Assembly: GCA_965637545.1 (NCBI GenBank)
Contig: OZ281494.1
Coordinates: forward strand, 6,510,001 to 6,574,000
Origin: Phallusia mammillata
Lineage: Eukaryota
Reading direction: 5' to 3'
DNA: 64,000 nt
Shown here: in pieces, positions 34,677-64,000 of the stretch
Position numbering within the stretch: position 1 is the first letter of the stretch
How the letters are laid out: each line of letters starts with the position of its first letter
Position numbers and translations under genes: made by a program
Notes under the pieces: model-generated
What the model was told of the DNA's origin: nothing
The model's database searches: none
What the model saw: the letters and a program-made list of their open reading frames with translations, nothing else

Positions 34677-36105
34677 ATGTTAAGTTTAAATAATTTAAAC
34701 GCTGTTAAGCACTGTATTATACAAACTAACACCATTATCAGTGGTAAGTCAACAGTTTTTTTTTAAAGAAGATTTGTCATCGTGATGCCTTTTTATTATT
34801 TTGGTGTAGTTTTCATCAGTTTTGCAACAAGTTATTGCCTCCGACTTCCCACTTCAAACAGCTCGGGTTATTTGGTTCACGCCACTGGTTATACAGGGCG
34901 CGATTGCCCATGGAACTTTGATTATGATTTACCAAACCGAACAAATCTCATGATGGTATTCAAGGTTTTTGAAGTCTGGTACCATCGGATGGGGTCCACA
35001 TTACTACAATTTCTACACACCAGATAATCCAGGTTTATATCTGTTACATTATCTTGCCAACAATAAAAAAATCTGTTATTTTGTTGTCGTAGGCAAAAAG
35101 TGGTGGCAATCGGGTCCATTCTGTCGCATTTACGTAAAGTCTGGTTCCAGCTTGCCGAACTGCAAACCTGGAGATAACAGACCAGAATTGTGTGGAAATG
35201 TCATACAAGAATCAATGCACTGGCCTCCCATGATTAAAACTGATTTTGCAAAATATTCTGCTGTAATGTCGTTTGATTTCATTGACTGTGAGGCAAACGT
35301 GTCGAATGTTGTCCCTGATATAGGTAACATTTTTCTTGTCCAGAGGAAGCTTGATTGATGTTTTATAACTGCCTGTCATAGACCTACTTATAAATCAATT
35401 GTTTTCTTTTAGAATTTTGTTTGTTTGGAGCTTTAGTTTAAATGTACTTACAAGGGCAAAATTGAACCTGAATTGATACATTTTGAGTACCTTTGATGTG
35501 AAAAATTTTCCCTTCAGTAACAACACTAGATCTTTTTATGTTTGCTTCAAGTGGTTGTAAAATCTGACGATACAACAACACACAATAACACATTGTTTAA
35601 ACCTTGGATAAACACAATTCAGATGACATCAACAACAACAATAACAACAGGAACATCACCCATTTCCGGTAATTTAGCTGATGTCACTGCAATTTATGGA
35701 AAAGCAAATTGTAAAAAAAAGATTTGTGTTTCAGCAGGTCAAACCGCTCCACCGCCGTCGGTATTTTTGTGGGTTTCTGTGGTTCTTGCTGTTTTACTGA
35801 TGATGGCATCTACGGCTATTGTGTATTTGCTGGTTAAAATTAGGTAATTAATTGAGAAGGGCTAACAAAACTTAAATAAGATAAAAATAGAAGGCAATTT
35901 TAATAAAATTCTCGATGCCAATTTTCACACGTTTTGAAGTCAATCTGGTTTGGTGTCATACAGAAAGATAAACGGATCTTCCCAAACCGAAGACAAATCA
36001 TCTACCAAATCGCAGGATAAAGAAATTGTGGTAAACGAACTTTACCACTCAAATAATCCAACGTTTGAAACTGAGACTGCGTACAATACTTTGTACAACC
36101 GATAA
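34677..36105 (+). CDS. R1: uncharacterised single-pass receptor, ectodomain subfamily A with type-I (ITSM-like) tail; one +1 frameshift. Exons 34677-34743, 34810-35032, 35093-35323, 35552-35668, 35735-35843, 35964-36105
   Basis: YCLRLPTSNSSG...CPW...PNRTNLMMVFKV / ...FYTPDNP; KWWQSGPFCRIY...YSAVMSFDFIDC; Thr-rich stalk; TM VFLWVSVVLAVLLMMASTAIVYLLV; tail KEIVVNELYHS...ETAYNTLYNR*. The T5 run at 34966-34970 has one T more than the paralog frame needs (real lesion or assembly error). Confidence 0.8.
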
Positions 36106-36971
36106 TCATGTAGCAAAGTCAAAAAGTAACATTTCGAGTTGCGTTTAGTGTAACTTGTTTTTGACATACATTTTACACCAAACTGTAGGTGACTTAGCAG
36201 ATGTCTAAGGCAAGAATACTTATTTTGTGATATTTTTCTTCAAAAATGATACCTGATTGTGCTATTGTTTGTTATATTTGTACGATTAAATTTTGGAATA
36301 AAATGAGATTAGTGTAATAAACGGACCCGATTGACATTTAAACAATCTTTGATTTGTTAAAGAGCAGCTCGAATCGTTTTTGTCTGAAGCATAACTGAGC
36401 AGTATGAGGTATTTAGGCAGCTAGATCGGGTTTAACATTACAACTAAGACTAAAATACATCGGGACGTAATGTTACGTAGAATACATTAGGTTGTCGGTT
36501 AAATAAAAAATCGATCCAAACGCCTCGATCCAAACCCTATACTGCACAGTAAGACCTAAATCAGCCCGAATGAGCTTGGACGGAACTAACGCAATACGTT
36601 GCATGTCTGTGTCCCAAACACTAACCGATCATATAACGTTTAACCCGATAATCCATGGCTATTATTAGAATTTGCATTGACAAAGCCTTTGTTATCTGCG
36701 GGCATACAAAATAGTACAGCTAATGATAAAGGGAATTTTATGTTTATTTATACATGTTTTTGAGGCGATTTACTGTGTTAAATTCTGTTAGTGATTTGAG
36801 TCATTGCGACGTAATAAGTGGCAAAAAAGTAACATGTATAGTTTCCTTAGTTTGGTTTTAGTTAAAATTTAAAGTCAAACAACATGGCACAAATGTAATC
36901 AACTTTAACACATATAAAAAAAAATATTTTGTTAAGTTATGATTTCAAGTCATTAAAAATGTTTCGAAAGA

Positions 36972-38966
36972 ATGTCGAGTTTCATAAATTTACACACTAT
37001 CCAACATTTTGTCAAAATGGGTTGCATCTTCTTAAGTGATAAGAAATTCTGGACTTCGTGCGTGGAAATAAAAAAAGTGAACAGGCTTAAATTTTTGCAT
37101 GAAATGCTTCTTCGGCTTTGCAACAAGCCTCCAACTTCCCTTTTCAAACAGGATTCATGATGCATGCTCCTGGATATGGTGGACATTTTTGCCAATAGAG
37201 GATTTATTACAATTCACCAAACCGAACAAATCTTATGATGATTTTCAAGGTTGTGAAATCCGATACTGTAGGTCAGAGGTGCAAGTCGGGCCGGGTTCGG
37301 GTTCGGGTTCGGGCTTAGGTATTTGTGAGAAAACAGGCTTAAAACGGGCCTGACTTTACGTTCCGCTTCCGCCAATGTTTTTTGTTTTTTTTAACAAAAA
37401 CACTCAGCTAAGTAACAATTCTCTGGCTTTGACCTAATGCCCACCCTCCTCTAAAACGTATTGTTTACCCTATTGTCTACTATTGTTCATTGTGTTTGTT
37501 GTCTTTCTCTTTTTTCTTTCTCATCCTTTGTTACAAGGCTTTCGTGGATAGGCCTGTCAATCAAAATTTCGGGCCTAAACGGGCTTTGCAAAAACGTTTT
37601 TTGTTCGGGCCGGGCTTCGGGCTTATACTTTCGGGTTCGGGCTCAGATTTCGGGCCCGCTTGCAACTCTGCTGTAGGTTATGTTGATAATCATTATAACT
37701 TTTGACAGACCAGGTAAGTTTTGGATAACTTTTAGCAGCAGGTGTCGAATAAACCAGCACGTTTGTCATTCTTCTTTAGAACACAAGTTCTATCAGGAGG
37801 CTCCTTGGTGCCGTATTTACGTCAAAGAAGGTTGAAATATGACCAAATGCAAAGTTAAAGATAGCAGAATAGAGCTATGTAAAAGTGACATACAAGGTGC
37901 TTTAAGCTGGCCACCCGAAATTACCACCTGGTTTAAACGATTCTCGGCTGTTATGTCTTATCAGTTTATTGATTGCGAATCAAATACTTTAATAGAAGCA
38001 TCTCAAAACCCAGGTAATTATAACCATTGGTAAACGAATTTGCATCACGAGAAGAATCAAACAAATATTTTGGCGGAATTTTCAGTGGTTGTTTCATCCA
38101 ATACATCACGACGTGACAATGGGACAGTTGCTGGACGGATAAACTTTACTCACCCAACTTACACCACTACAGTGACAGGAACAACGCCACTTTACGACGA
38201 CGTGTTGCGCTACAAAGGTATTGTGATAGTTTCATTAACATAGAATCGCTATTCACTAAACGGTCTTGCAGGGAAATGTATAATCCTTATTTACATACTC
38301 GTGATATACTTCACTAGAGAAACAAGGAAGTCGCTATTACGAATTATAAACCATATTTCCCATTTGCTATATTCGTGTTTTTAGAACCAGCTGCCTAGTT
38401 ATTGTATAACACACTCTGCGCACCTGTATAGCATGGAATCACTTGCAGTGAATAAAAAATAACTTGTTGACAGGTCAAACCACTGAGAAAACCTCCCCAT
38501 TTTTATGGGTCGTCGTGATCCTTGCAGTTTTGCTTCTCTTTGCATGTTGTGTCACCTTGGTTTTGCTTTTCAAAATCAGGTAAATATTTGACATGAAAAA
38601 CACCGTCAAATGTAACGTTGCAAACCTGATCAAAATCCTAGTGCAGTAAAACCTTAAACAGAATCGACTGATAAGAATATTTTTAACAGAATACATATTT
38701 TACAAATAAGCTTAGTGCAGTATAAGATTTCATGCAATATAAGTTAGAGTTGTTGTACTGAATCTGGATGTAAGTTTATCAGTTTGATGTATTAAATTTA
38801 TGTATTGCTTACACAGGAAATTGAAAACAACAAGAGTTCTTCCAACACGCTAACAGAAAACACTTCGGAACCGCAGTGTAGGGAAATTGTGGTCAACGAG
38901 CTTTACCATTCTACCAATCCATCATCTGAAAAGGAAGTTGTATACAATGCCTTTTACAAAACATAA
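36972..38966 (+). pseudogene. R2: pseudogene of the receptor family (ectodomain A, type-I tail)
   Basis: Exon-1 donor is G|ATAAG; frameshift after LPFSN; TAG where paralogs have Trp; hAT MITE inside exon 2; TGA in exon 3 near 37832; recognisable TM exon 38474-38579 and tail EIVVNELYHS...EVVYNAFYKT*. Confidence 0.88.
37274..37670. mobile_element. hAT MITE with internal (GGGTTC)n repeats, inserted in R2 coding exon 2
   Basis: TIR cagaggtgcaagtcgggcc / gggcccgcttgcaactctg; perfect TSD ctgtaggt; the reading frame ...KSDTVG|YVDNHYNF rejoins across it. A related end fragment lies at ~23945-23972. Confidence 0.93.
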
Positions 38967-39622: not shown

Positions 39623-41739
39623 ATGTTATGTAAAACCGCTTTAAACACTATCCAGCATTTTGCTGCGACGATTTGCGTCATTGCAAGTGGTAAGTTATTA
39701 TTTGTATAACATATCGTTGAACAGTTAAAACCTCTCTACTTTAAATTTGTGTTTCAAGTTTCGTTCAGTCCCACGTCAGGTTATTGCATCCGACTTCCAA
39801 CTTCAAACAGTTCCGGATATTTTTCACACGCTTCCGATTATTCAACAGTGCAATGCAATTGGGTTTTTGATTACAATCCACCCAACCGAACAAATCTTAT
39901 GATGGTGTTTAAGGTTTTAACATCTACCAGTGTAGGATCGATTCTTAATCACTACAACTTCTATACACCCGATAACCCAGGTACGTCATTACCACCTGAA
40001 GTATCTTACAAAATAAATAAATAAATAAATAAATATTGTCTCGTCTTAGGCATGAAGTGGTGGTTATCAGGTCCTTTCTGTCGTATTTATGTAAAGTCTG
40101 GTTCCAATTTGACAAACTGCAAACCTGGAGTTACGAGACTAAACGTGTGTAAAAATGTCATACAAGAATCTGTGATGTGGCCTCCCATAATTAAAACCGA
40201 TTTTATACAATATTCTGCTGTGATGTCATACCAGTTTATTGATTGTGAAGCAATAGAAAAACAAAAACAAATCAGCACAACGCCTAACCCAGGTACAATA
40301 CTTATTTCATATGCAAGATTCAAAGCATTATTGCGGAAAACTGTGATTTGTTGATTAATATAACTGTAGACAAACCTGTTATTAATTTAGAAATAAAAAA
40401 ATTGCGGCCTAGAGTGTGGTTTAATGATTCTGTAGCAATGTAATTTAAACCATTGATTTGTCCATTGATTAAAACATACTTCATTCCTCTTGAAGTCTCG
40501 GAGTCGAGCACATCTCAGTACGATAAGCAAACGAGTAGTGGTTTGCTAAACAACTCGATTCAGGCAACAACAATGTCAGGAAAAACGTCATCTCCCGTTG
40601 GCACAGCTTGCGCTTCAGGTATTGACACTCTGTTTAGTTTCAATCAAAACAATGCTTGTTTTTGCTAGTAAATTTCAGACTGAAAATTGCTGTGTTGATA
40701 AAGCAAATTACAAACACTTTGATTCTTGCCATATTTTCCTTATATGTATACACCACAAAACAGGTATTACAGTTATTAGGACGCGGTGGGGTGTATTTTT
40801 TCGAACCCAGAAAGCTCTCGGGGACAGATCCCGATCAAGTTTTTTATGTCTGTACATGGTTTAGGCGAGCCGGATCATTCGGCCAAGTTCCTGCCCAACA
40901 CGATGCGCTGTTTTTTCCTTCTTTTCACGGGCCCAGGACTTTTTTTTTTTTTTCACGGGGTTCGAACCCAGGACTCCCCCGGGGACGAATCCCGATCAGG
41001 TTTTTTATGTCTGTATATGGGTCAGGCGCGCCAGACCGTTCGGCCAAGCTCCTGCCCTTCACGGGCCCAGGACAATCTGCAACGACATCTAGCGTAATAA
41101 TAAAATCAGACATTAAAGTTAATACTTGTCCGAAATACTGGCAATGACAAACATGTGTTTTAACTTAATTTTTACCAAGTTTTATACACCAACCACAAAC
41201 TAACACAAACCTTACACTGATACCAGTTACTAATTATTGCAGGTCTTTCCACAACTGATACCATCATTATAGCATCAGCTGCTGGTGTTCTTGCAGTATT
41301 TTGTTTACTGCTCATCCTGCTGTTGTGGCAAAACTGCAAAAACAAACGCAAAACAAGGTTAGCTATTTGTACGAGTTTAAATAAAAAGCTTTCTAAATTG
41401 CACATTTAAATCCCCAATGATTCGCAAAGTTTTAAACCTCAGTTTAAAACCAGAAATATGTACAGAAACGGCTCCATGATTTCACTTTCGACGCAAAACG
41501 AACATCTACAAGGCCAACCACCTCCTAAACAAGCTTACACAAATTTTCCACCAGCACCGCCGAATCACGGTAAAAGTTTGTTTATTCTGTGACGGTGTTA
41601 TCAGTGTTGATTAGTTTCATGTTTTGTAGATTCTGTGGACGTGAATGCAGTTTCAAAACCTAACGACGACGGTTATGTTGTTCCAATTCAACGCTCTGAT
41701 CCAGTTTACGAAGATGTAAACGGAATTTATCGTAATTGA
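39623..41739 (+). CDS. R3: intact receptor, ectodomain A with type-II tail; exons 39623-39689, 39759-39980, 40050-40292, 40496-40618, 41243-41357, 41430-41569, 41630-41739
   Basis: Continuous spliced ORF: signal, YCIRLPTSNSSG...QCNW...PNRTNLMMVFKV...FYTPDNP, KWWLSGPFC...FIDC, Ser/Thr stalk, TM IIIASAAGVLAVFCLLLILLLW, tail ...NDDGYVVPIQRSDPVYEDVNGIYRN*. The exon-6 acceptor is my best in-frame choice. Confidence 0.85.
40776..41095. repeat. GC-rich intronic insertion in R3 with an internal ~160-bp direct duplication, probably a TE relic
   Basis: gggac..atcccgatca.gttttttatgtctgta.atgg...ttcggccaag.tcctgccc at ~40820 and ~40982; ttcacgggcccaggac occurs twice; not seen in the homologous R4 intron. 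Confidence 0.6.
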
Positions 41740-42435
41740 ACTGTTTACTTCATCAAAAAGTTTTCTCACATTGGATATTCAAACACAATATTGCAATTTC
41801 TCAACCTCGCATTTCTAAAACTTTTTTTTCTTAGTTCCTAATTTTTCAAGCTCTGTTTAATAGAAGTTAAAATCGCATACAAAGGCATACTCCTACAAAA
41901 GACGATTTAGGTGAAAAAATTTTTATCCGTGAGTTTGCACTTGTGTTTACTACCGTCATCTTACCTGAACTGTTTCTATGTTCAAAACCTGTTGTGACGA
42001 CTTACGTTTATTACAGAAGTCAAATCACAATTCTTTTTGAAAAGACTTACAATAGGGAAAACTGGATGACATCAAAACCGTCTAATGTACCTGGTGCAAA
42101 ATCTAACGCAGTGTGTAATGATATCGTATTTTGTTTACAAGTAATGCAATCATTGTAACAACCGAAATACTTAAATGCGTTGAACAAACATCGAATTGTC
42201 AATCACGAAAGTTGCTGACTCAACGTCTAACAAATTATCTCCTGTTAGATTCTAGCAGCTAGAAGATTACAGTGCAGAACGAGCAGCAAAGTTTAAGTTT
42301 ATCTCGCAAACAAGTCAATCTACTAAGGGCAAAATTTTTATGTAGAAAGAAAAGATATAATTTGTTAATCAAACATGCATACTCAGCTTTTTCAATTAGA
42401 TCATTAACACGTTGTTCGAAACGTTGTTAACATAG

Positions 42436-42576
42436 GAAATCGCAAAGTACGAACACGTTAACAGCAAGCACTTTGGAACTGCAGAGTATAGGGAAAGTGT
42501 GGTCAACGGGTTTTTTCAGTCTACCAATCGATCATCTGAAAAGGAAGTTGTGTACAATGCCGTGTATGAAGCATGA
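42436..42576 (+). pseudogene. orphan type-I tail exon, a duplicate of the R2 tail carried along in the R3/R4 tandem duplication
   Basis: Encodes ...ESVVNGFFQSTNRSSEKEVVYNAVYEA*. The downstream flank 42660-42930 matches 39060-39350. No ectodomain or TM exon precedes it. Confidence 0.8.
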
Positions 42577-43145
42577 GGTTTCAGTAACCTACGCAATCCA
42601 TATGAACGAAGCATACTTAAATTATATAAGAGCATTTATCGTGGTACAATCTTCATTGTTTTAACTATTAATTAATTACCCATGCCAAGTTGTTTTATAA
42701 ACATAATTATGTTTAACTTTAAGCTCTACACTTCAATTGAGAAACCGGGCCTAAAAAGAAAACTTTTGTAATTAAGATGTTTTGCAACTAAGATGATGTT
42801 ACGCACCGACTTGCTCAAATCACGTTTTAAAACTGTGACGTATGAACGGCAATAAATAATTTGCATTTACTGTGTATGGGTAAATAAAGCCTCACCATAC
42901 TTTCAGTGGTTGTATTGCAAATTAGTTTACATTTACTTATGAGGGTTAGACAAACAACAGATTGACGATGAGCCTTTGTGATGTTGTGTTTCGTTTTGTT
43001 GTTTAAATTATTAAGGGAATTACTGCGTTATCACTTTTATTGTTTGGTCAGACGAAGTTAGTGCACAATAAGGCTTGACTTAATTATGTGTTGTTTCACT
43101 AAACATTCACACTTTTACATGTACTTTCTAGTACACAGATAAACA

Positions 43146-45754
43146 ATGTTGTGTAAATTCAGCATGAACACAGCTCAACGTTTTGTTGCAATGATTAGTG
43201 TCATTACAAGTGGTAAGTTAAGTCAAGAATTTAGGGCATTTCGGGGCGATGTTTTATGTTTACTACTTTTCTTCTTTCTATTTGTAATTCAGTGTCGCTT
43301 GGCCTTGCATCAGGTTATTGCATCGAACTTCCAACTTCGAACAGTTCAGGAAATTTCGTCCACGCCTCTGATGTTCGAACAGAGCAATGCAACTGGATTT
43401 TTAATTACAATCCTCCCAACAGAACTAACCTTATGATGGTGTTTAAGGTTTTGCAATCGGGTACTGTTGGTCTGTTGCATCAGCAGTACGACTTCTATAC
43501 ACCAGATAATCCAGGTACGTGTAAACCAGTGGTTCTCAACCGCCTGTCCACTGATCTGTGCCGGTTTGCGTCAACTTTTCTGCCGGTCAGCCAAATATAC
43601 TACAAATTTATATCTCAATTGAAAATGCAAGATGTTAAAGGCCATTTGTCCATTAATTAAAAAATATAACATCCATATTTAAGGTGATTTAGAATGTTCA
43701 CGTTCAAAAATTTGCAGCATGTCGTACGTCACAAACAACTTGTCGTACGTCACAATGCTGTAAGGGTGGTGCCAAAAAGTTTAAAAGTGCAAAAGACACC
43801 AGCAAACTTCTCATTACATCTTTTAAGTTGCATATTGTTGTCGTAGTTACATTTTGGGGTGATTTTGACAGTCCACCGGTCCGCAAAATTTGTTTTGAAA
43901 GTTTACCGGTCCGCAAACTTTAAATGTTGAGAACCGCTGGTGTAAACCACTTCAGGAACCTTGTCGACATAAACACGTGATGAATATTTTCTTACCGTAG
44001 GCAGAAAGTGGTGGCTGAAAGGTCCATTCTGTCGTATTTATGCAAAATCTGGTTCCAGCTTGAAGAACTGCAAACCTGGAGATAAGAGACAAGACTTGTG
44101 TCGAAATGTTATACAAGATTCTGTGATGTGGCCTCCGATATTAAAAACCAGCTTTGCATCATATTCTGCTGTGATGTCATACCAGTTTATTGATTGTGAA
44201 GCAAACGTGACGGAGAACAGAACCAGCACGAAAATGACCATGGGTAAGAGATTTATTTCAACAGCATTAAGATTCGCCATACTTCGCACACATACAGGTG
44301 GCTTACACCTCGCATCTGCGCACCTTTTTATCATTCCACGTGACTCAAGTGTATATGAACAGGTGTAACTGATGTGGACCTACATATCACTGATAATGGC
44401 ATGAGCACTTGCCAAAATATTTGAAAAATAAAGCATGTCGATTTTTAGAGCCGTTATTTCACCATTCACCATTAAGCATCAAGATTTGTTTGGTAGTTTC
44501 ATATTTTATCCTCGTGCAAGGCCTGAATGAGTTATACTCACAATAGGTCCGCTGCCGAGCTGCCGGTTTATTGCAATCACTTTTTTCGAGCAAGAATTCC
44601 ACCGGGTGGAGGCAATGCTGCTCTAGTTTCTTGTTCAGAGAAAACAAACTACCTTGATTGGATTAGAACCAACAACCTTGTGAACAAATAGCGGAACCAC
44701 TTAGCCACCGTGATTTGCGTGATTATTATTGTGACTAAAACAAACCGTGAATTAATTGTGCAAAATTTTTCGTGAGAGGTTAATGATATGGACGTGGTCA
44801 GAAAGACTTACACAACATTTTTTCTCAATTTAATCCTGTTTAACATATTTTGTTTGTGCAGATATCTTGATACCAAACACATCCAACATCACCAACTCAG
44901 TGCAAACAGGAACAACGTCACTTCCTGGAAGCGCAGCTTGCGTCTCAGGTATTGACACTTTATTTTCGGACTTGACTCATTGTGATAGCTGCTGTGTTGA
45001 TAAAGCAAGTTACAAACACTATTGGTTGCAAAATTTTTCTGGAACGAACACCACGTAACCAAACAAATATTGAAATGACAAACTACCTAACGTCCCCAAT
45101 GTTGCAGACCACAAACATGAGCTTTTACGTTGTATGTTACAAGCGAATCTAATAATTAAACTACAATTAACACAAATATTACACTATCATTACCACAGTA
45201 ATTAATAATTTCAGGTCTTACTACAATTGACACCATCGTTGTAGCATCAGCTGCTGCTGTATTTGGGGTATTTTGTCTGCTGCTCATCATATTGTTGTGG
45301 CGAAACTGCAAAAACAAAAATAGATCCAGGTTTGTAGTCACACCGTTACCCAACTATTAAGAAAACAAAACCTCTCAGCATATGTGCAATATAGTGACTG
45401 GGACATGTGTAACATTTCATGCGCATTACAAGGTAGCGTCTACTAACGTAATCGTTTTATTCCGGTAAACACAGCTTTAAAACCATCAGTTTGTCCAGAA
45501 ACAACTCAATAATCTCACTTTCAACACAAAACGATCATCTACAAGAGCAACATATTCCAGAACCAGCTCCGTTGAAACACGGTAAAGCAATGTTTATTAT
45601 GTGACGGTGTCAAAAGTGATGGTGAGTTTTATGATTTGTAGATTTTGTTGATGTGGATGTTGCTTCAAAACCTAACGACGACCACGGATATCTTGTTCCA
45701 ATCAAACAATCTGTTCCACTTTACGAAGATTTAAATGGATTGTCTCGTACTTAA
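43146..45754 (+). CDS. R4: intact receptor, ectodomain A with type-II tail; exons 43146-43212, 43293-43514, 44001-44243, 44862-44948, 45215-45329, 45475-45581, 45642-45754
   Basis: Spliced ORF co-linear with R3; TM IVVASAAAVFGVFCLLLIILLW; tail ...NDDHGYLVPIKQSVPLYEDLNGLSRT*. Confidence 0.88.
43527..43939. mobile_element. hAT (Charlie/Buster-like) MITE in R4 intron 2
   Basis: TIR CAGTGGTTCTCAAC / GTTGAGAACCGCTG; perfect TSD gtgtaaac. Confidence 0.93.
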
Positions 45755-46659
45755 TCGGTCCCAAAGTTCAGCACATTGCAATGCCGAGTTTGAACATCAA
45801 AATTTCTCCAGCTCGTATTTTACGCTTGAATTTGTTCTTTTTAAGTTCTGCTTTATAAAGCTTACGTAATAATTAAAAAAATACACTTGCTGTTACAACT
45901 TAGTATATTTACACAAAAATATTAATTTAGTTGACTTTCCTCTTTGTGTTTAAGATTGTCAAAATCACAATTTCAAATGAAAAAAAGATAAAACCAAAAC
46001 AAATTTATGTATCTGCCCCCAAAACATTTTTATTATGTGTAATATGAAACAATTTTTATTGTTACCGAGTTGCCATTGTTATTTAGACCAAAAATGTTGA
46101 ATGCGCTTTAAATTCTTTAAATTCAATGTTGTTGACTTTTAGTGATATTGATGGTTGCTGACTGATGGTCGTATGCCTTCCATCGACGTCAGGTACACTT
46201 CAAGCATGTCACTCGATAAGTCATGTTTTGGTTAACTTGCTGATTTTAGAAACTGTTTAACAATGACAATTTGATAGTGACAATGCTAATACAACTTGTC
46301 TTGACTTGCCATAAACCAGTAATTGTTATGCTTTTCAGGCAAATGCTTCAATCTACTCAAATCAAGGTTTAGGAAAGGTGTTTTTATACACTTATTATTT
46401 TCGATGCGCAATAAGTTATGCTGGTTTGGTGCACAGCAAGGCCAAATGAGTATCACCTATTAAAATGCGTAGGAAGTGCTATGATGCTCAATATTGTTTG
46501 AAAACAAATCAGTATGATGAGTGTTTGGCAAGTTGCCTACAACGTCAGGGTCTTAGGAGGTTCTCAATAGTACAGCTAGCAGATGCATTAGGCGTATGTA
46601 AAGTTTATTGATTGTAAATTAGCTCTGAAATTTAATTTTCAAAGGTTATGTTGTTCAAC

Positions 46660-48530: not shown

Positions 48531-48619
48531 TTAGTGCTTGCGAAGCAATGTTGTTATGAGCAGGTAAGAAAATATGACAAGCACAACAGCAGCTGTTATG
48601 GTCTCAGTCGTAGAAAAAC
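48531..48619 (-). pseudogene. second orphan, inverted type-II TM exon relic
   Basis: cttcag|GFSTTETITAAVVLVIFSYLLITTLLRKH* on the reverse strand. Confidence 0.65.
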
Positions 48620-54015: not shown

Positions 54016-55857
54016 TTATACGTTAACTGCAGGACGGCTGTACAAATCGTTGTAAACAGTTTTTCGCTCCGTCGAGGGTCCAGTGAGTGGGTTAGATGCG
54101 TTTCCTGGAGTTTGTTGGTTAGGGGGAATGAATAAAGTATCGGTCGCTGCATGAAATGGAAACGGGTGTCCTATGCTTTTTCTTTCCTTTCTACATAATT
54201 AGAGTAATAAAAGACTTCAGTGCTTAGAAAAATCTTATTCTAACGCAATATACATATACTTGTGAATGTATATAGTCTGCAGTAAAGAAAAAAATGCGAG
54301 ATAATAATTGACATAATTTCATACCTTTAAGTTAATTTTATTTATTGTAGTTATTCAGCCAAAAACTTACTTAAATTTCCAAAACATGAACATTAATCCT
54401 GAGCATGCAAGTGTGAGCAGAACAGTTAGAATTACCAGCAAGCACAGTAGGACAGTTGCGTTTGAAGGTGCACTTGGATCTGTGAAATAAAATGATGCAT
54501 TATTGTCGAGCATAATCAGCCAATGACACCAGTTCTGTACCAAACGTTTGTCGCCATGATTCGGTTAAATGAACGCATTTGAGTGGAATCGCTAACTTAA
54601 ACAAGGCCCAATGAGGACAGATGATTGCTACAGTTTTAGGGGGTCGGGGTATTCGTGTCGAGTTTGGTTAAGGATTAACTTGAATTACAAGTTTTCCGAG
54701 TGTGATTTTAATATTGCGACAACTTCATAAATTTTCGGACAGACCAAGGGGTTCACTTCACTTTTACTTCAGGTTCGATCACCAATTATACGAATCACCT
54801 AATTTGGTTGCTTCACTATGTTATTTGACTGGCACCAGCCTTAACTTACCTTCTGCAAATTTTTCACATGACAAACTGGTGTATTTAAAATCAGGTGTGG
54901 TTTCAGTAGTTGGTGTTTTACTGGTTGATGTTGGTGAAAAAACGCTTTTGCAACGGACTGGAATTTTGGTGGTCCCTGGAATCGCTGTGCTTGCTACCAC
55001 AGATGTTGAAATATATTTAGCAGTATGAAAGCAAAATAGTTAGAATCCAAATATTTTGTTTCAGATAAACAAGTTGTAATGCAAACCTATTTGAGAAAGG
55101 TATACACAAAGCATAAATTCTTGTTTCAACAATAACATAGATTACTTTCGCAAAACATCAAATATCATTTTTAAGAAAATTCATGGTCACCTTGAGTTCG
55201 AGTTGTACTGCTGATGGCTTGGGTGTCGCAATCAAATATTTGGTATGACATCACAGCCAATGAATGATAAAACACAGTTGTTAAATTCGGTGACCAACTG
55301 GACAGAGTTTTAATTCCTTCTCTACATAAGTTACTTTTGGTGAGAACATCTTTGCATAATTCTTTGTTGGAGCCTGTTTTCATGTAGACGCGACACCAAG
55401 GACTGTTTGGCGCCGAATACTTTGCTTCTATTTTAGCAAAAACGTAGTTTATTTTCACAACGGCAAAAACAAAACAACTTACCTGGTTGACCAGGCAACC
55501 AAAAATTGAACTCGGATTTTAAGTCGAAAACGACGTTTTCCAAAACTTTGAAAACCAGCAAGCGATTTGAACTGTTGTTCTGTTGAGTGTCATTTAGCTG
55601 CCAGTCACACTTGCTCACTGTATTTTTGCCATATCCGGTGCTGTGCACCAGAATGCCTGAACTATCGGAATTAGGAAAAGGAATGCATAAGCTTGTTGCC
55701 AGTGAAAACAAACCTAAACAAAACTGGCTGAGATGCATTTTTTATGTCTTTCATATTATAATTATATCAAAATGCTATTAATGTAGGCTAATTAACTTAT
55801 AATCTGCCTTTACTTACCGGCAATTGCTGTTAACAAAAGCAGTTTTAATGCCGACAT
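54016..55857 (-). CDS. R7: intact receptor, ectodomain B with type-I tail; exons 55857-55818, 55713-55483, 55427-55191, 54993-54850, 54479-54371, 54190-54016
   Basis: MSALKLLLLTAIAGLFSLATSLCIPFPNSDSSG...KCDW...NRLLVFKVL...FNFWLPGQP; SPWCRVYMKTG...AVMSYQIFDC; stalk; TM VLLCLLVILTVLLTLACSGLMFMFW; single tail exon ...ERKTVYNDLYSRPAVNV*. Confidence 0.85.
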
Positions 55858-56040: not shown

Positions 56041-58182
56041 TAACTAAGCTATTCTTGAATGACCTTCTCCGCTTTAAAGTATGAGTTTTGCTGTTGCAAT
56101 CCAGTTTAATTTTTTTTAATCTATTTATTTACATTTTGGCATTAGTTAAGCAACAGGGCAATTCCACTAGGATGAAACTCCGATTAGACTAATTAAGGAA
56201 CTGTGAACGTTATTTTATTTGGTTCCGAAATGCTTTATTGACTCTTTACACGTACAAATTATGTTGTAAAAAATACGCATCGTTAACGGTAACAAAATAA
56301 TTTAAACTCAAACGAAATGGCACATGTTAAAAAAACACGAAATCACACATGTTATGTTTTCAAAAATATACAAATACAATGACATTTTACGTTACGCAAT
56401 GTGGAAATAAGAACCCAATTCTTGTGGTGCATAAAAAGAACTGTTGCATGCAACCTAAAATAAAACAGGTCTAAAACTGTTTTACATATGTTTCTTGCAA
56501 CAAATTATATGTTTTGTAACATTTTTGAAAGCAATTGATATTTGATGACTATTCTGGAGGTGGTTCATCGTAAACGTGGTTTTTAGGAACTTGTCCTTGC
56601 ATTGTAACAGAACAATCGTTATGGTCGTTTTGTGATGGAATTTCCGGTTCGACTCTTCCTGTTAAATGAATCAGATGAAAAAATGGTAAAATACTGTAGT
56701 GTTTGCAACATTTTTATGCCTGTAGAATTTAATAATAACATCAAAAAATGTTGCAACATGGAAGCACACATTTTGCCATAAAAAGTCAATGTTTCGTGGG
56801 ACACTTGCCGTACTCTCTATGAACCGCGTTACTACTCAAAAAGCTCTACCTTATTATTTTAAGGGATCATTACTTATTTGTACCATGATTTGTTGAAAAA
56901 GACACGTAATATAAAGATTGGCGTAACCAGCGATTCATGTCCTCAATAACGGCGTTTCAAAACAAATTTTCTCATCAACAAAGAGTTAAATTTTACCCAT
57001 TGGCTTAGGTGCGCCACAAAACGTAAATCACAACTGACATAGGGGTCCTGAAGTAGGAATGAACCTCACCTTGTTGTAAGGCAGAAGGATAAGGCACGTA
57101 AGCAGCAGAGAAAATAGACTGATGACTTTGTCGTACACTGTTTCTTTTCGACAGCTGGACCATTGGTGGGTTTCTAAACACAAAATGTAAAGCCAAAGCA
57201 ACAAACTTTCAAACCATTCAGTGAATTGTTCTAAGTAATAAACGAGATTTAAACGACATTAATAACAAACCTTACTCTTCGGGTCTGACGCCGATTTTGA
57301 AGCAAAGATACGATAAGCAGTATGCAGAATATGGTCAGCAAAATAGTCGATGTTACAACAACTATTATTTCAGTCAGTGAAAAAACTGAAAATAAAAATT
57401 CGGCATTAAAATACATTTTTTTCGTTTTGCACACCAAAACATGGTAGTTAAAATAGAAAAGTTAACAAAAAACTCAGTTATTCAAATATTTTATATATTT
57501 TTTCTTTATTCGAGTCTTGGCATAAACTACTTTGCGCATCAGTAGAAATTCATTGTGATGCTAGAGCTAACATATGTATACTAAAGTATTATTTGTCAAT
57601 AATAATCAAAGTATACATGTAACATCAAAAGAAGAGATGTCGTCTAAACTTGTTGGCAACATTGTAGATCTAGTTTTCTTTACACTTTATTTGATTTCAC
57701 TTCCTTACAAGATTGACAGACTGTGACGACAGAGTTATGACGGACATTTTTGTAAGGCGTCGAATCTACACTCTACGCTCTACCTGTTGTTGTTGTTGTT
57801 GTTGCTGTTGTGGTTGTCTGTTTGGCTTTCGTTGCGGTACAAATCAAAGGTGTTTTAGTCGTTTCGGTGGTTTCATTTTTTGTCAACCCATTTTCCAAAC
57901 ACACTACAATTCCAGATATAAGTTACTGTCAGTTATTTTGTAATGGGATGAAAATTTCATACCAATAACAGTAATAAAACTTGCAGAGCCTTGCACAAAT
58001 ATTTTACTTAGCACAATTGGTAACATTTAGTTCTGCATTGCATTGTTTTCTAATTTCGTGTAACAGTGAAAATTTGAAATGACGTTTCGTAACTTACTTT
58101 CTTTGAATTGTCTACATGACAAACTGGTGCATTCAGAATACGATGTGATTTTACTCGATGGTGATTTACTGCTAGATGTAGG

Positions 58183-58569
58183 TGTAGAATTCAAGCAGTG
58201 TGCTAATTCTACCTTTCAGTCTCTTGACTGGCAGAATAAGACAGCCGGTTTCAGATGCACTTTATTTTCAGTGATTTAAAACGGATTTTTGACCACCTTA
58301 TTTAAATAGAATCAAAACGTTACAATTACAAACAGTCCAAACAATTTACCTTATATAACATAAAATTATCCACCTCAGCAAAGTTTAATACAACACCACA
58401 GACTTAGATACTGCTGAAACAATGACTGGGCTACACGTGCAGAGACAAGAAACCGAGAAAGCAGGACGTACATAAAGTTGGCAGTTATGTCGTCACAATG
58501 AACGTATAGGTCACGGGTTACAACGGCGGGAAAAGTTTTTGCTATTGGGGAGCGTTACTGTCCGTTACA
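58183..58569 (-). repeat. 3' LTR (387 bp)
   Basis: Direct repeat of 62069-62455; I count 5 mismatches. Confidence 0.95.
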
Positions 58570-58790
58570 TACCGGCCCCTAAATAACGAACGTGGAGACA
58601 AAGTTATTTACACACAACAACAGGAGGACAGAAACGAAACACAAGAAAGTTACGCTGCCTCAAGTAAGCACAGCTTGCGAATATCGCGCGTATATACAGC
58701 TCTCGCGGTGCGAACGCGAACACTTCTGACAGCTCCTTCGCTATCAGGGCACACCACCACCACAATGCCTTTTGGTCAGGCACCTGGGGT

Positions 58791-61700
58791 TCATCTTGTA
58801 CGCGACCAAAACCAGGTCACCGGCCCCAAAGCTCTTCGTTGGTCGTACCCATAAAATTGGCAGGTAGTCGCGAAGCCACCTCTTCCAAAACGTATCTGCC
58901 AGCCACCCAACCGTACGCAGCGTTCCCCGGTAGTCGTCAGCAGTGGCGAACTTGTCCGGGGTAAGGAAACGTCCAGTTCTGGAACAATCATTCTCCTTAT
59001 CTTAACAGCCGTTACCGCAGCGCCTTCCAGATACGGCAATGCGACAGGCCTTACATGGGCCTCACCAGATTTTCCAAACATCAATGAATAGAGAATATAC
59101 CTGACTGAATCAACAAAGCAAAGATAACACACCGCACCGAACCCGGTCTTGCAAGCATTGCAAAAACAGAGCAGCTGTGTTGCAACGAAGACTACGTTGG
59201 GAGGTTTGTAACAACGCAGTGTCAAAAGATTCCAATGCTCGATCGCACTTTCGGAAAGTGGGTTGTCCCAATCCAGTTGCTGGTTGCACAGACTATGCAT
59301 TAGCTGTTTTATAGAAAGCAGAAATGGCTGGATAAATCCAAGCGGGTCGGAGACCTTACTAATCATCGAAAACACTACGACAAGGCCTTTGGTACGGTAA
59401 GACCCTTGTAGCAACTTGTCGTTTAATAATGTTCCATCGTAGGAAGCGGAACAATCGAAAAGAGTTCGAAATTTGCCACCCGTCGCGTGGTGTGGTATAT
59501 TCCGTGTTTGTTTTGTACATTTCAAACTACCTGAAAGGATTCCTGGAGCAAATCCCTGTCTCAAGTAATCCTGTATCTTTTCCCAGTACTTTCCAAGCGG
59601 TTCGGTATACTTGTGGAAGCGACGCTTTAAGTGTGACAGGCGTCGTTTTGCCAAGCTACTGTCATAGGACAGAACCGGGACGGGCAATTTCCAAGGCAAA
59701 ATCTGGTAATGTCCGTTCACTCTAGTGACACTGTTTTCTGTATTTGAAAGAACTCGTTTGTGTTTAAGTGAAAGTCCAAGGTCACTTGAACCTCTATCTT
59801 GAAAGTCAATACTGTATAACTGATCCAACTGATCAGGTAGTTTTGTGTTAGCGTGTATGTAATTTACACTCGTGTGTCTGATGTCATGTTTTCTTTCGGG
59901 GCCGAACAAACACCAGCCCAAACCAGTGCGAATAGCAACAGGGTCGCCACGAGAGCCACGTACAGCCTCGTGTTGCTCATGAGCCTCGTAAACATCGGCT
60001 GCTATGAGCAAGTCCACATCTGGACAATTTATTACAGAGAATTTGAGATTTCGAATATGCGGATACCTCTTAATATCATCAACAGTAGGAATGCTGCCTT
60101 GTAGGTTGGGTAACTTGGGGACGACCCTTAAACTTTTCAACATAAAACAAGCGCCATCGTTCAGGCCTTGTACGGACAGCGAAACTTTGCGACTGCGCAA
60201 TGTTTGTGTTCCGTTTACGGTAGTAATTGTCAAGTTGTCTTCCACACCGCTTAGCCCTAGTTTCTTGGCCAATGCTGCAGAGCACAATGACGTGTCTGAT
60301 CCGTCGTCAAGAAAGGCATGCGTGAAATGGGGTTTACAATTCCTATCCAAAACAGTAACTGGCACGACCTTAAGTCGCACAGAATGAGTCTGCAGTGTCG
60401 CAGCGGATATTCCTGGCAAACCGGCCCCGTCAACTTCCGTTGGATCGCTAGAAGATTGTACAGATAAGCGCGAAGAGTGCGCCCAATGCAATAGCGTGTG
60501 ATGCCTTTTCCCGCAGGAGTCTACACGGCATACATATTTGGACAAACATTTGTCCGCACAATGCTCGGGACGAAAACAATTGAAGCACAGTTTGTTATGA
60601 CGCACTAGCTCAAAACGTTCTTTTACTGGTCGGCTCCTAAAGGCCTCACATTTCCACAAAAAATGTGACGACCCGCATTCGGGGCATGTAGGCGTCCGTC
60701 CCGGTGAGTCGTAATTCACAAAAGACTCTTCATCTGACACTACCGAGTATGTAGTTGTGACTCGATCTGGGAACTTGCCTTTGTTGGTAACTTGTCCTTG
60801 CGACTCGCATTCCTCGTCGGAAATAAACCTCATCAATGGCGATAGAGTGTCCTCTACCAACAATTCCAAAAGATCCAACAACGCTTGAAAGGTCACTGGT
60901 TGATTTCGCAAACGAAGTTCCGAGGATCTAGTGATGAATCGTCTGATTGCAGTATGCGGCAAGCGCTGTACAACAGCCTCAATATTTTGAGGCAGATCAA
61001 GCGTGTATTTACAGTCCCACTGACTGAATATGTAACTTTCTGCAGCTTGTGCACGAAACTGTCGTAAGCCCTTGAAGTCGCTATCCTTCAATTGCGGGCG
61101 TTGTGTCAATCGGTCCATGTGTGCTCTTACAACAAGGTCTAATCTCCCATGTCTCCTCTGGAGTATATCTAATGCTTCCTTGTAACCTAAATCGGGGGGC
61201 ATGCTTTTGCATTCCAAAATGTTGGTCAGAGCATCTTCAGTGCAAAATTCACAGAGATATCCCAGCTTCTCGGCATCAGACAAATACGCCTTATTTATCT
61301 GCCGATCGAAGTCGTTCATAAACTTGTGATAGTCAAGAGGATCGCCGTCGTATTTCATTAAATGCAGTTTCGGTAAATTGAAACCTTGTTTTATAGTTTC
61401 TGCAATTACATACCAATTCTCGGTAGTCGCTGGTGGACCATGAGGGTGAGGTTTTATTGTTGCATTTAGATGTTTTTCTTCAAATGTGCTGGCCCCAGTG
61501 GCCTCTGCGCTGGTGGCAACCACTGGACCTTCTGCCTTAGTTCGGAGGGTTCGAGAAGGCCCGACAGGAACCTGTGACTTGGCTGGTGCAAGTGGTTCGT
61601 CTGTCGGGTTCACATTCGTCTTCTGTTTGTCGTCCCCATGCGAAGGCTCACACGAGTCAAACTCTCTTAAAGTTTCAGCAGCGAATTCTGCCAATTCCTT

Positions 61701-62024
61701 CTCTTGTCGGGCTTTATCAAGCTCGAGTTCCATTTCCAAATTTTGTTCTCTGGCGTTCAGTTCCATTTCCAAATTTTGTTTTCTGGCTTTCAGTTCCATT
61801 TCCAACACTTTGGACTTAATGGCGCATCGACGTTTTAGTTGTTCCATCCTTAACGTTGCAGCTTCGGCCTCACGGCCAGAACGCGAGCTGGCAGTACTTT
61901 TGACACTTAGCACAGAACCTTTAACGGACGGGTCACCGCCGTTAGTTTGTTCATGCCTGACATGATCAATCACGTCAAATAGCTCTTGTGATGTGCTGGG
62001 GATATGTTCTTCCTCGCTTGACAT
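58791..62024 (-). CDS. BEL/Pao Gag-protease polyprotein fused to fragmentary Pol
   Basis: ~1077-codon ORF: coiled-coil N-terminus, LPKLHLMKYDGDPLDYHKF (BEL Gag), CPECGSSHFLWKC / CFNCFRPEHCADKC / CRVDSCGKRHHTLLH, AFLDDGSDTSL. No YxDD RT core and no integrase HHCC/DDE region is visible. Confidence 0.85.
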   Translation of the reverse strand: MSSEEEHIPSTSQELFDVIDHVRHEQTNGGDPSVKGSVLSVKSTASSRSGREAEAATLRMEQLKRRCAIKSKVLEMELKARKQNLEMELNAREQNLEMELELDKARQEKELAEFAAETLREFDSCEPSHGDDKQKTNVNPTDEPLAPAKSQVPVGPSRTLRTKAEGPVVATSAEATGASTFEEKHLNATIKPHPHGPPATTENWYVIAETIKQGFNLPKLHLMKYDGDPLDYHKFMNDFDRQINKAYLSDAEKLGYLCEFCTEDALTNILECKSMPPDLGYKEALDILQRRHGRLDLVVRAHMDRLTQRPQLKDSDFKGLRQFRAQAAESYIFSQWDCKYTLDLPQNIEAVVQRLPHTAIRRFITRSSELRLRNQPVTFQALLDLLELLVEDTLSPLMRFISDEECESQGQVTNKGKFPDRVTTTYSVVSDEESFVNYDSPGRTPTCPECGSSHFLWKCEAFRSRPVKERFELVRHNKLCFNCFRPEHCADKCLSKYVCRVDSCGKRHHTLLHWAHSSRLSVQSSSDPTEVDGAGLPGISAATLQTHSVRLKVVPVTVLDRNCKPHFTHAFLDDGSDTSLCSAALAKKLGLSGVEDNLTITTVNGTQTLRSRKVSLSVQGLNDGACFMLKSLRVVPKLPNLQGSIPTVDDIKRYPHIRNLKFSVINCPDVDLLIAADVYEAHEQHEAVRGSRGDPVAIRTGLGWCLFGPERKHDIRHTSVNYIHANTKLPDQLDQLYSIDFQDRGSSDLGLSLKHKRVLSNTENSVTRVNGHYQILPWKLPVPVLSYDSSLAKRRLSHLKRRFHKYTEPLGKYWEKIQDYLRQGFAPGILSGSLKCTKQTRNIPHHATGGKFRTLFDCSASYDGTLLNDKLLQGSYRTKGLVVVFSMISKVSDPLGFIQPFLLSIKQLMHSLCNQQLDWDNPLSESAIEHWNLLTLRCYKPPNVVFVATQLLCFCNACKTGFGAVCYLCFVDSVRYILYSLMFGKSGEAHVRPVALPYLEGAAVTAVKIRRMIVPELDVSLPRTSSPLLTTTGERCVRLGGWQIRFGRGGFATTCQFYGYDQRRALGPVTWFWSRTR

Positions 62025-62068
62025 CTTTCTCAAGACATTTGAGAAACCAAAGAAGCCGTTTTAAATGA

Positions 62069-62455
62069 TGTAGAATTCAAGCAGTGTGCTAATTCTACCT
62101 TTCAGTCTCTTGACTGGCAGAATAAGACAGCCGGTTTCAGATGCACTTTATTTTCAGTGATTTAAAACGGATTTTTGACCACCATTTTTAAATAGAATCA
62201 AAACGTCACAATTACAAACAGTCCAGACAATTTACCTTATATAACATAAAATTATCCACCTCAGCAAAGTTTAATACAACACCACAGACTTAGATACTGC
62301 TGAAACAATGACTGGGCTACACGTGCAGAGACAAGAAACCGAGAAAGCAGGACGCACATAAAGTTGGCAGTTATGTCGTCACAATGAACGTATAGGTCAC
62401 GGGTTACAACGGCGGGAAAAGTTTTTGCTATTGGGGAGCGTTACTGTCCGTTACA
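62069..62455 (-). repeat. 5' LTR (387 bp)
   Basis: Direct repeat of 58183-58569, followed on the minus strand by a short spacer and a TGGT PBS-like start. Confidence 0.95.
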
Positions 62456-64000
62456 GTAGGTGATAAAACGTTTTTGCAACGGAGTGGAAATTTTGTGGTC
62501 GCCAGGATCGCTGTGCCTGCAGCCACGGATGTGGAAATTATTTAGTTGTATAAGTTGTATAAAAGTAAAATAGTTAGAATCCAAATATATACGTTCAGAT
62601 AAATGTTTTAATGCTAGCCTATTTGAGAAGGGTTGACAAAAATCATGGATTTTGCTTGTTTCAATAATAACATTGATAACTGTTGCAAAACATCAAATAC
62701 ACTTTTTGTCACCTTGAGTTTGAGTTGTAGTGTTGCTGGGTGGGGTGTCGCAATCAAATATTTGGTATGACATCACAGTCAATGAATGATAAAACACAGT
62801 TGTTAAATTTGGTGGCCAAGAAAAAAACAGTTTGTATGCTTTCCCCACATAAGTTATTTTTGTTAAGAACATCTTTGCATAATTCCTTGTCAAAACCTGT
62901 TTTCATGTAGACGCGACGCCAAAGACTGTTGGACGCCGAATACTTTCCTTCCATTACAACAAAAATGTAGTTAAATATTTTAACCAAAAGCAAACCACTT
63001 ACCTGGTTGACCAGGCAACCAAAAGTTGAACTCTGAATTTAAGTCGAAAACGACACTTTCCAGAACTTTGAAAAGCAGCAAGCGATTTGGACTGTTGTAG
63101 TGAGTGTCATTTAGCTGCCAGACACACTTGCTCACTTTATTTTTGCCATACCCCGTGCTGTGAACCAGAATGCCTGAACTATCGGAATTAGGGAAAGGAA
63201 TGCAAACGCTTGCTGCCAGCAAAATCAAACCTAGAAAAAAAAAATTTGTCGTTTAGTTTATAATTATATCAAAGTACTGTTTATGTGATAAAGATCTTGT
63301 ATAACTTACCGGCAAATCCTGTCATTAAATGCAGTTTCGTTGTCGACATATTTCACCACACGAACACGTATTTTATGCTCGTTACTAATCTAACTAATAC
63401 CGACAATAAGCTCGCATAATCGATAACCTACTACGTGACATATTGCAGGTTTATTCGCCGCATTCTGCTATTGGTTCGCAAGTTAAACGTGTCAACCATA
63501 ATTCATATGCATAAAAGAGGAAGGACAGTGATTCAAGATATTTTGAACTAATCTACATTTGTTTGACCTTTCTTCGATTAAAATCTTATTTTACGGCTAA
63601 TTCAGTCCAATAAAGTCATTTCATCCATATTTTATTTTTGATTCATATTTTTATTTTGGAGAGTAGATCGTTGCGTAAAACAACACAGGAATGTTACTGA
63701 ATAGAAAAAATAATTCAGAGGACTAGCAACAATGTAAATTCTTTGTTCGCTTGGAATTGTTTTATTGTTTCTTTACTCGTACTTTTTTCTGTTGTATAAA
63801 ACACGTATCGGGAAAGATAGTGGTCAAAAAGCAAATAATAAAATTCGAAGTTACATGTTAGGTACGGCTGCAGTAAATGAACACAACAAAACCTGATTGC
63901 AGACCTAGGAATTTCGAAAGCTGACAAAACAATGCAAAACGTCGGGATTAGAAAACGTGATCAAGTATGAGCCCAATTGTCGTTGGACTTCACACAAAGT

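Follow-up and report, generated by a model that had tools for sequence, protein, structure and literature searches.

A tandem array of predicted tyrosine-motif membrane receptors with a tentatively CUB-like head in the ascidian Phallusia mammillata

In the current study, we describe a cluster of related single-pass receptor genes in Phallusia mammillata, located on a 64,000-nucleotide stretch of contig OZ281494.1 (assembly GCA_965637545.1, positions 6,510,001 to 6,574,000 of the forward strand; hereafter the window), which has a G+C content of approximately 36% and contains no gaps. A first-pass annotation, made from the letters alone, had proposed eight copies (R1–R8) in both orientations between positions 34677 and 63349. 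Copies were sought using tblastn with exon peptides of conserved open reading frame (ORF) blocks, and then using hidden Markov models (HMMs) of the two ectodomain exons (e1 and e2) against the six-frame translation, and both approaches bore out this count and arrangement. The e1 model matched exactly eight times in the window (R1–R8; E 1e-6 to 3e-29), and the e2 model located eight loci at 34.7–63.3 kb, on single ORF segments in R1–R7 (with the R2 segment divided by an in-frame stop) and on two pieces in R8. R1–R6 are encoded on the plus strand and R7–R8 on the minus strand, and the copies fall into two subfamilies, A (R1–R5) and B (R6–R8), with approximately 35% identity between the subfamilies and 60–86% inside each. 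Chance is excluded for the array because paralogue E-values among the window copies reach 1e-38, intron phases are conserved, and the ratio of non-synonymous to synonymous substitution (dN/dS) is 0.2–0.5 at a synonymous divergence (dS) of 0.2 to more than 1.

Gene models were obtained through three-frame reading of the sequence and listing of in-phase GT/AG sites, with R3, R4, and R7 spliced by script. The copies have a common plan—that is, an exon carrying the ATG and half of the signal peptide, e1, e2, one or two Ser/Thr-rich stalk exons, a transmembrane (TM) exon, and a tail exon—in which the introns are of phase 1 as far as the TM exon and of phase 2 after it. The split signal peptide that had been described for the copies was recovered, as the upstream ATG exon of R3 is retained in R4 at 59% identity and that of R7 is likewise conserved in R8. 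The alignments likewise contain the six conserved cysteines of the earlier description, arranged as C...CxW in e1 and as [FW]CR, xC, LC, and DC in e2. Signal segments, TM segments, and NxS/T sites are directly readable in the spliced translations.

Three copies had been reported to read through intact, and two of them do so over their full length. R3 (39623–42576, plus strand, subfamily A; exons at 39623–39689, 39759–39980, 40050–40292, 40496–40618, 41243–41357, and 42492–42576) splices into an ORF of 284 amino acids (aa) with GT–AG boundaries at five of five introns. R7 (54016–55857, minus strand, subfamily B) consists of a signal exon at 55857–55818, e1 at 55713–55483, e2 at 55427–55191, a stalk exon at 54993–54850, a TM exon at 54479–54371, and a tail exon at 54190–54016; it provides a 306-aa ORF from an ATG inside e1 (55738) with GT–AG boundaries at four of four introns, and an alternative start in the upstream signal exon, read by eye, gives about equal length. 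The third copy, R4 (43146–45329, plus strand, subfamily A; exons at 43146–43212, 43293–43514, 44001–44243, 44862–44948, and 45215–45329), keeps an open frame as far as the TM exon (244 aa), and the term intact holds for it only up to the membrane because no tail exon related to those of the other copies was found in 45330–46800, either through homology or through a scan for phase-2 acceptors.

The remaining five copies had been described as broken, and their lesions were confirmed where checked. R1 (34677–36105, plus strand, subfamily A) has its signal ATG at 34677, e1 at 34810–35032, e2 at 35093–35323, a stalk and TM segment at 35542–35847, and a tail exon at 35950–36105, with a frameshift in e1 near 34970. 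R2 (36990–38966, plus strand) is a pseudogene with in-frame stops in both e1 and e2, and is made up of a signal relic (36990–37037), an e1 relic (37145–37271), e2 (37780–38013), and stalk, TM, and tail exons at 38040–38243, 38473–38583, and 38805–38966, respectively. R5 (46799–47958, plus strand), another pseudogene, retains e1 (46799–47001), e2 (47073–47315), a stalk exon (47557–47754), and a tail-like piece (47905–47958); its e2 contains an in-frame stop and its e1 acceptor is displaced by one base.

In subfamily B, R6 (49105–51003, plus strand) comprises a signal exon at approximately 49105–49200, e1 at 49257–49475, e2 at 49655–49891, a stalk exon at 50211–50387, a TM exon at approximately 50652–50760, and a tail of a second type from 50878. 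The TM exon is out of frame with the phase-1 acceptor, and a stop follows after eight codons (50640–50680); as spliced, R6 would thus encode a secreted protein of head plus stalk and not a membrane receptor. R8 (57005–63349, minus strand), the pseudogene nearest to R7, has a signal exon at 63349–63310, e1 at 63230–63003, e2 at approximately 62990–62713, stalk exons at 62538–62449 and 58185–58099, a TM exon at 57437–57249, and a type-2 tail exon at 57196–57005. Its e2 has lost a conserved cysteine and carries a frameshift, and a retrotransposon lies between its stalk exons. This insertion contains a BEL/Pao-type ORF of 1080 aa (58791–62033, minus strand; Peptidase_A17, E 1.6e-16; DUF1759, E 1.9e-7)—that is, an open ORF of a long terminal repeat element, including the aspartyl protease, with a G+C content of 45% against 36% around it. 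It is not a member of the family and counts as one of R8's lesions.

Three further fragments were detected beside these copies. A ninth relic, R0 (32846–33111, plus strand), was found by tblastn and HMM upstream of the range covered by the first-pass annotation; its pieces resemble e2 and include a frameshift, and no e1, stalk, or TM exon was found for it. The exon-peptide search also returned two orphan TM-exon relics on the minus strand (48182–48289 and 48540–48665) of the TM type seen in R3, R4, R6, and R8, which sit between R5 and R6 without ectodomain exons and are probably remnants of additional inverted copies. A single giant gene with multiple CUB domains was considered and ruled out, because a signal exon, a TM exon, and a stop are present separately in every unit and because the units occupy both strands.

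Relatives of the family are few. Among 1.84 billion representative proteins, an e2 profile matched 11 (best E 1.9e-10), of which the full-length ones are annotated as 'uncharacterized protein' and belong to the ascidian Clavelina lepadiformis (LOC143461689, LOC143462528, and, identified later, LOC143463424; hereafter P0005, P0006, and P0027); these are RefSeq models with isoforms, and one UniRef record of a Clavelina copy has been automatically named 'CUB domain-containing protein'. The other matches come from contigs of metagenomes or read assemblies, where they are ORFs lacking annotation. No Pfam family matched the window exons at E<=1, and no paper describing the family was found, in keeping with its earlier designation as undescribed. 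A protein-atlas search with a window e2 exon gave no match, word-indexed homologue searches recovered nothing beyond the queries and a single paralogue (low-complexity stalk words having swamped the first of them), and a scan of metagenome contigs with the e2 alignment produced 127 pattern matches, none of which was confirmed. One 28-kb metagenome contig (L002) carries at least three tandem copies.

The Clavelina relatives also form an array, with at least nine genes on one strand over approximately 34 kb (CAUIVY010000128.1, approximately 5.97–6.01 Mb) and the same exon plan. Their heads share approximately 20–30% identity with the window copies, and their tails are longer and richer in Tyr; broken copies were not seen in that array beyond one short gene model of 102 aa. 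One member (L001:12496-14182) has the most canonical CUB motifs of the array and could act as a bridge when homologues are searched for. When e1 and e2 were combined in a maximum-likelihood tree, the window copies grouped as a single clade (support 89) apart from Clavelina, with A and B as its two branches, from which we take the expansions to be lineage-specific. To judge from the sequences, the family is restricted to tunicates, and all identifiable relatives are ascidian, which agrees with its initial placement in an invertebrate chordate.

The Tyr-bearing tails that had been reported were recovered through a regular-expression scan of all readable tails, although the architecture supposed to be common to the eight copies has to be qualified, in that the tails are of at least two unrelated types and the TM segments of three. 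R1, R2, R3, R5, and R7 share one tail type, and R6 and R8 have a different one, in which they agree at 43% identity across 46 aa (E 2e-7). The TM and tail types form a mosaic across the copies, TM and tail modules having been exchanged between them. Among the type-1 tails, R1 contains VVNELY and TAYNTLY, R2 contains VVNELY and VVYNAFY, R3 ends in VVYNAVYEA, the tail-like piece of R5 reads VVDNVLY, and the R7 tail ends in TVYNDLYSRPAVNV. The conserved unit across both genera is NxxY (as in VVNELY, DNVLYQP, DNILYQP, YNxLY, and INPIY), with two occurrences each in R1 and R2, further occurrences in R3, R5, and R7, and presence in all but one of the six Clavelina tails that were read.

This unit recurs in two settings. 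A membrane-proximal h-h-N-x-L-Y motif (h, hydrophobic) is found in R1, R2, and R5, in degenerate form in R3, and in Clavelina as DNVLYQP, DNILYQP, and INILYQQ; a C-terminal Y-N-x-h-Y motif is found in R1, R2, R3, and R7 and in Clavelina as EYNSLY, with a true NPxY (INPIY) in one Clavelina gene. A strict ITIM, the tyrosine-based inhibitory motif of immunoreceptors (scanned as (I/V/L/S)xYxx(I/V/L), here VxYxxV), is present in the C-terminal motif of only one of the five type-1 window tails, that of R3 (VVYNAV); R1 (TAYNTL) and R7 (TVYNDL) read TxYxxL, and R2 reads VVYNAF. Clavelina tails with an ITIM fit carry VLYQPI and ILYQPV. By their letters, some of the NxxY motifs thus appear to overlap ITIM-like sites or sites resembling the immunoreceptor tyrosine-based switch motif (ITSM). 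With one or two NxxY motifs in a short tail, the family matches the NPxY/NxxY type of tail that docks phosphotyrosine-binding (PTB) domains, the motif itself being short, and NxxY would suit signalling by PTB adaptors or through endocytosis no less than ITIM signalling.

The window copies are old duplicates that evolved under purifying selection: pairwise dN/dS over e1 plus e2 is 0.2–0.5, and dS is 0.22 between R7 and R8, 0.5–0.7 between R3 and R4, and saturated between the subfamilies. The idea of birth-and-death evolution put forward for the cluster was upheld, given duplication, module exchange, pseudogenisation, and a clade separate from that of Clavelina. A second haplotype is visible in one DNA run that spans the whole stretch. 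The allelic differences listed for R3 e1 comprise six synonymous and one non-synonymous change, and those in the R3 stalk exon are mostly non-synonymous, with an additional in-frame insertion of 6 nt; this pattern is expected of a coding gene whose head is under constraint while its stalk is free. From the dN/dS of 0.2–0.5 and the synonymous bias in R3 e1, it therefore follows that the copies are or were real genes.

In the same DNA run, two joints of the size of one repeat unit were each observed on a single contig within 39700–45690, one running from 40593 to 44996 (the signature of a one-unit deletion) and the other from 43220 to 39700 (the signature of a one-unit duplication). The anchors of both are short and paralogous, and the joints represent either haplotypes produced by unequal crossover or assembly-graph cross-overs between paralogues. 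Very high-copy repeats were also noted in the introns of R3 and R4 (40700–41060, 43850–43940, and 44350–44440), where the summed contig depth exceeds 1 million compared with approximately 300 in the flanks.

The first-pass annotation could not assign the ectodomain to a named family, and it remains without a significant sequence match; we now tentatively call it CUB-like. In an alignment of e1 from twelve exons and two genera, the first Cys is invariant, the second, in C-x-[WYF], is nearly so, and the exon end reads D/N-x-h-x-h-P-D/G-G/N in both genera. The resulting pattern, C...G...CxW followed by a hydrophobic strand and D-x-h-x-P-D-G, is that of the N-terminal half of a CUB domain, with the N-terminal Cys and the Cys of C-x-W at the places of the first CUB disulfide pair, their bonding being judged from position. 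The Cys of the 'FCR/WCG' motif is present as well, and e2 adds three cysteines that are foreign to CUB. Among the aligned e1 exons, only that of Clavelina gene 5 ('VCADYIELPDGK') has the Cys of the second disulfide in the canonical C-x-D-Y context. The e1 exon of the Clavelina paralogue with 'VCADYIELPDG' aligned in the correct register with positions 23–66 of the Pfam CUB model, scoring E 0.03 and 15.1 bits where the cut-off is 21.4, and an e1 profile aligned with the CUB domain of neuropilin-2 from the first Cys (E 0.87, not significant). Among language-model features, PF00431, the Pfam CUB family, occurred in 58 of the 100 nearest clusters.

Structure prediction added to this picture. AlphaFold modelling of the P0006 ectodomain alone, using 22 correctly registered alignment rows, gave a beta-rich model (pLDDT 79, pTM 0.75), which replaced a first run on full-length P0005 with a shallow alignment (pLDDT 59) whose Foldseek matches were meaningless. 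In an exhaustive comparison with 48,161 chains of the PDB using VIA-align, which is independent of Foldseek, the meteorin CUB domain ranked first (Z 7.1 over 91 residues at 3.2 A), and approximately 22 of the top 50 entries were CUB domains of unrelated proteins, including those of GPR126, TSG-6, neuropilins, spermadhesin, C1s, MASP, cubilin, PCPE, and C3/A2M-family proteins; a re-examination of the Foldseek matches agreed with this ranking. An internal repeat relating e1 to e2 was also considered and rejected as an artefact, as MAFFT had placed e1 fragments on e2 columns when many e2 rows were present and hhalign was negative. As judged from motif register and the predicted model, the ectodomain is quite probably a jelly roll of the CUB type that has diverged and that has a loop bounded by Cys inserted in e2.

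The explanation that we favour, at a probability of roughly 0.6, is that the cluster is a tandem array of tunicate-restricted type I membrane glycoproteins with a CUB-like head and a Tyr-motif tail. Each gene encodes a split signal peptide, an ectodomain of approximately 150 residues on two phase-1 exons, a mucin-like stalk, a TM helix, and a tail of 30–60 residues, with the head predicted to be a very divergent CUB-type jelly roll that keeps the C...CxW disulfide and, where e1 ends, the D-x-h-x-P-D/G-G strand. The head may bind an extracellular protein or glycan ligand, and binding may lead to tail Tyr phosphorylation or adaptor docking, upon which PTB or SH2 proteins (of the Shc/Dab/Numb type or the SHP type) could signal or drive uptake. 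The array itself arose through tandem duplication in this lineage, accompanied by exchange of TM and tail exons and by losses through frameshifts, stops, and a retrotransposon.

A number of results weigh against this explanation. In addition to the R4 tail exon that was not found and the variation in tail type, three small RNA contig sets with the same species label contained no R3 or R4 exon, the high-copy repeats of the R3 and R4 introns being the sole parts of the stretch present in them, and a collection of 15 billion proteins held no protein from the copies of this species, although neither result proves that the genes are silent. The fold evidence comes entirely from the Clavelina homologue P0006 and not from a window protein; no Cys precedes the 'YNFYTPDNP' strand in the window copies, which leaves the second canonical CUB disulfide missing; no tested sequence reached the curated threshold of PF00431, and P0005, P0006, and P0027 had no CUB match in Pfam at E<=10; and profile searches of PDB sequences with the e1 and e2 alignments yielded nothing significant, with no match at all for e2. 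Foldseek placed p24 GOLD domains and cupins first (E approximately 3e-3, TM <0.5 by query length), and VIA-align interleaved GOLD, cupin, and viral jelly rolls with the CUB domains at Z 5.5–6.9, with GOLD and cupin entries at Z 6.3–6.9 close behind the best CUB and TMED1 GOLD at 6.9. The Foldseek order, the Z of TMED1 GOLD, and the missing significant sequence match to CUB speak for a rival reading, in which the ectodomain would not be a CUB homologue and an unrelated or new GOLD-like or cupin-like jelly roll would have converged on the CUB shape and Cys spacing; the structure-comparison tool itself notes that Z <8 may reflect a common arrangement only. We regard this as rather doubtful, as CUB domains make up almost half of the 50 best entries though rare in the structure library, CUB register holds for the N-terminal pair of Cys, for CxW, and for the D-x-h-x-P-D-G strand, and PF00431 dominates the language-model neighbours. 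The p24/TMED cargo receptors, moreover, combine their GOLD domain with a coiled coil, a TM segment, and a COPI/COPII tail motif (KKxx/FF), hallmarks that are absent from our translations; in place of the coiled coil the family has a Ser/Thr stalk, and its Tyr-motif tails do not end in KKxx, which sets it apart from the p24 proteins. It is also conceivable, if very unlikely, that the whole array is a decaying relic with no copy still expressed in this species, the R3 and R7 frames merely having escaped damage so far. Five of the eight copies and the three fragments are broken, and the RNA and protein collections are silent as described, but R3 and R7 keep 284 and approximately 306 codons over five or six exons with intact splice sites, the allelic variation of R3 e1 is strongly biased towards synonymous changes with an in-frame stalk indel, and the Clavelina relatives have RefSeq models that include isoforms.

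If the genes encode CUB-like, Tyr-tailed receptors, as we favour, their role can be read in different ways. The innate-immune or self/non-self role originally suggested for the cluster remains a conjecture; the NxxY core of the tails fits PTB-adaptor or endocytic signalling equally well. In its full form, the heads of a variable innate-immune or allorecognition family like KIR, Ly49, and Botryllus FcoR would sense self or non-self while ITIM tails recruit SHP-like phosphatases; this is consistent with a pseudogene-rich tandem array, lineage-specific expansion, the exchange of TM/tail modules, the canonical ITIM of R3 and those of Clavelina, the joints in the DNA run that may reflect deletion and duplication of one unit, and the tails of Botryllus FcoR, which have a similar '[A/D]VYxxV' core in addition to ITIMs (PMC12582321). 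However, the head dN/dS of 0.2–0.5 indicates no diversifying selection at the level of whole exons, the e1 allelic differences listed are mostly synonymous, even the closest paralogues are old (dS 0.2–0.7), the TM charge needed for pairing with adaptors bearing an immunoreceptor tyrosine-based activation motif (ITAM) was not seen, a strict ITIM is missing from most window tails, which share NxxY instead, and the heads do not resemble the Ig or Sushi domains of known tunicate allorecognition receptors; we consider such a role unlikely. A receptor for non-immune adhesion, endocytosis, or gamete or tunic recognition, with a head that binds matrix, an egg coat, or a secreted ligand, is likewise a tentative reading and on balance a doubtful one. 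Paired NxxY motifs would dock PTB adaptors in the manner of the NPxY/NxxY motifs of integrin beta and the LDL receptor, for uptake or cytoskeletal anchoring; the core is found in both genera, including the true NPxY of Clavelina, and the VIA-align neighbours are CUB proteins of ligand capture, guidance, fertilisation, and matrix processing. Yet large, pseudogene-rich tandem arrays are atypical of housekeeping adhesion or endocytic receptors, and tail motifs this short could originate by chance. A more far-reaching idea, which we offer as a long shot, is that ascidians have a second, non-Ig system of variable CUB-headed receptors with haplotype-variable arrays, in which TM/tail swaps switch signalling and which would act in the recognition of self/non-self or of pathogens, making it a CUB counterpart of KIR, Ly49, and FcoR.

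The remainder of the window contains other gene families. Two adhesion-GPCR-like (G protein-coupled receptor) paralogues lie on the plus strand at 17844–19706 and 29664–31471, each with a GPCR proteolysis site motif ('CKCNHLTLFTVLL') followed by seven-TM segments; this pair, directly upstream of the receptor array, is a further local tandem duplication. Several glutathione S-transferase exons or paralogues occur on the minus strand at 1496–12000, and the N-terminal glutathione S-transferase domain was confirmed for the ORF at 1496–2011.

Tunicates are the sister group of vertebrates, and receptor families specific to the tunicate lineage are central to ideas on the origin of chordate recognition systems. 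The family described here went undetected by Pfam, yet two or more ascidian genera have it as a conserved tandem array in which the exon plan is constant and the tail Tyr residues are conserved, and it is a clear case of TM/tail exchange among tandem paralogues. Should blood cells or gametes express it, the Ig/Sushi-based fester and FcoR would be joined by a receptor class built on CUB; if it is an ordinary adhesion or uptake receptor, it would still be a new and very divergent branch of the CUB superfamily.

Among known systems, the KIR, LILR, Siglec, and Ly49 loci are also tandem arrays with pseudogenes, exchange of TM/tail segments, and ITIM-type Tyr residues in some tails. Compared to these, the ectodomain fold of the present family is neither Ig nor C-type lectin, no activating partners with charged TM segments were seen, the duplicates are older (dS 0.2 to >1), and diversifying selection was not detected. 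The FcoR and fester (FF) proteins of Botryllus schlosseri form large, clustered, tunicate-specific receptor families whose members have low mutual identity and a constant architecture (PMC12582321). FcoR proteins are of type I, with tails that contain ITIM, hemITAM, or '[A/D]VYxxV' core Tyr motifs, the last of which resembles the VVYNAV and TVYNDL of the window tails; the heads of FF/FcoR consist of Ig-like and Sushi domains, FF proteins have three TM helices, and expression, polymorphism, and haplotype variation have been demonstrated for both (PMC12582321). In contrast, the family described here would have a CUB-like jelly-roll head, and Pfam gave no match to an Ig or Sushi domain in the window exons or the Clavelina proteins.

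CUB-domain membrane and secreted proteins, such as neuropilins, cubilin, spermadhesins, and CDCP1, act mostly in ligand capture, guidance, fertilisation, and matrix processing. CDCP1/CD318, DCBLD1/2, neuropilins, and NETO are likewise single-pass proteins, and they bind their ligands through a jelly-roll head of the CUB type at the N terminus, as the present family would. Short tails in which phosphotyrosine motifs serve for docking occur in CDCP1 and DCBLD, comparable to the Tyr-motif tails here. Relative to these vertebrate receptors, with which no significant sequence similarity was found, only one head domain is present here and its second half contains an additional Cys loop; a mucin-like stalk replaces further domains, the second canonical disulfide is missing from the window copies, and the genes form a pseudogene-rich, lineage-specific tandem array. 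The Clavelina proteins P0005, P0006, and P0027 are true homologues, with the same exon plan, six-Cys head, stalk, TM segment, and NxLY tail motif. We regard the family as real, as still without a name, and tentatively as a very divergent form of a known kind of protein, the CUB-domain single-pass receptor with a Tyr-motif tail.

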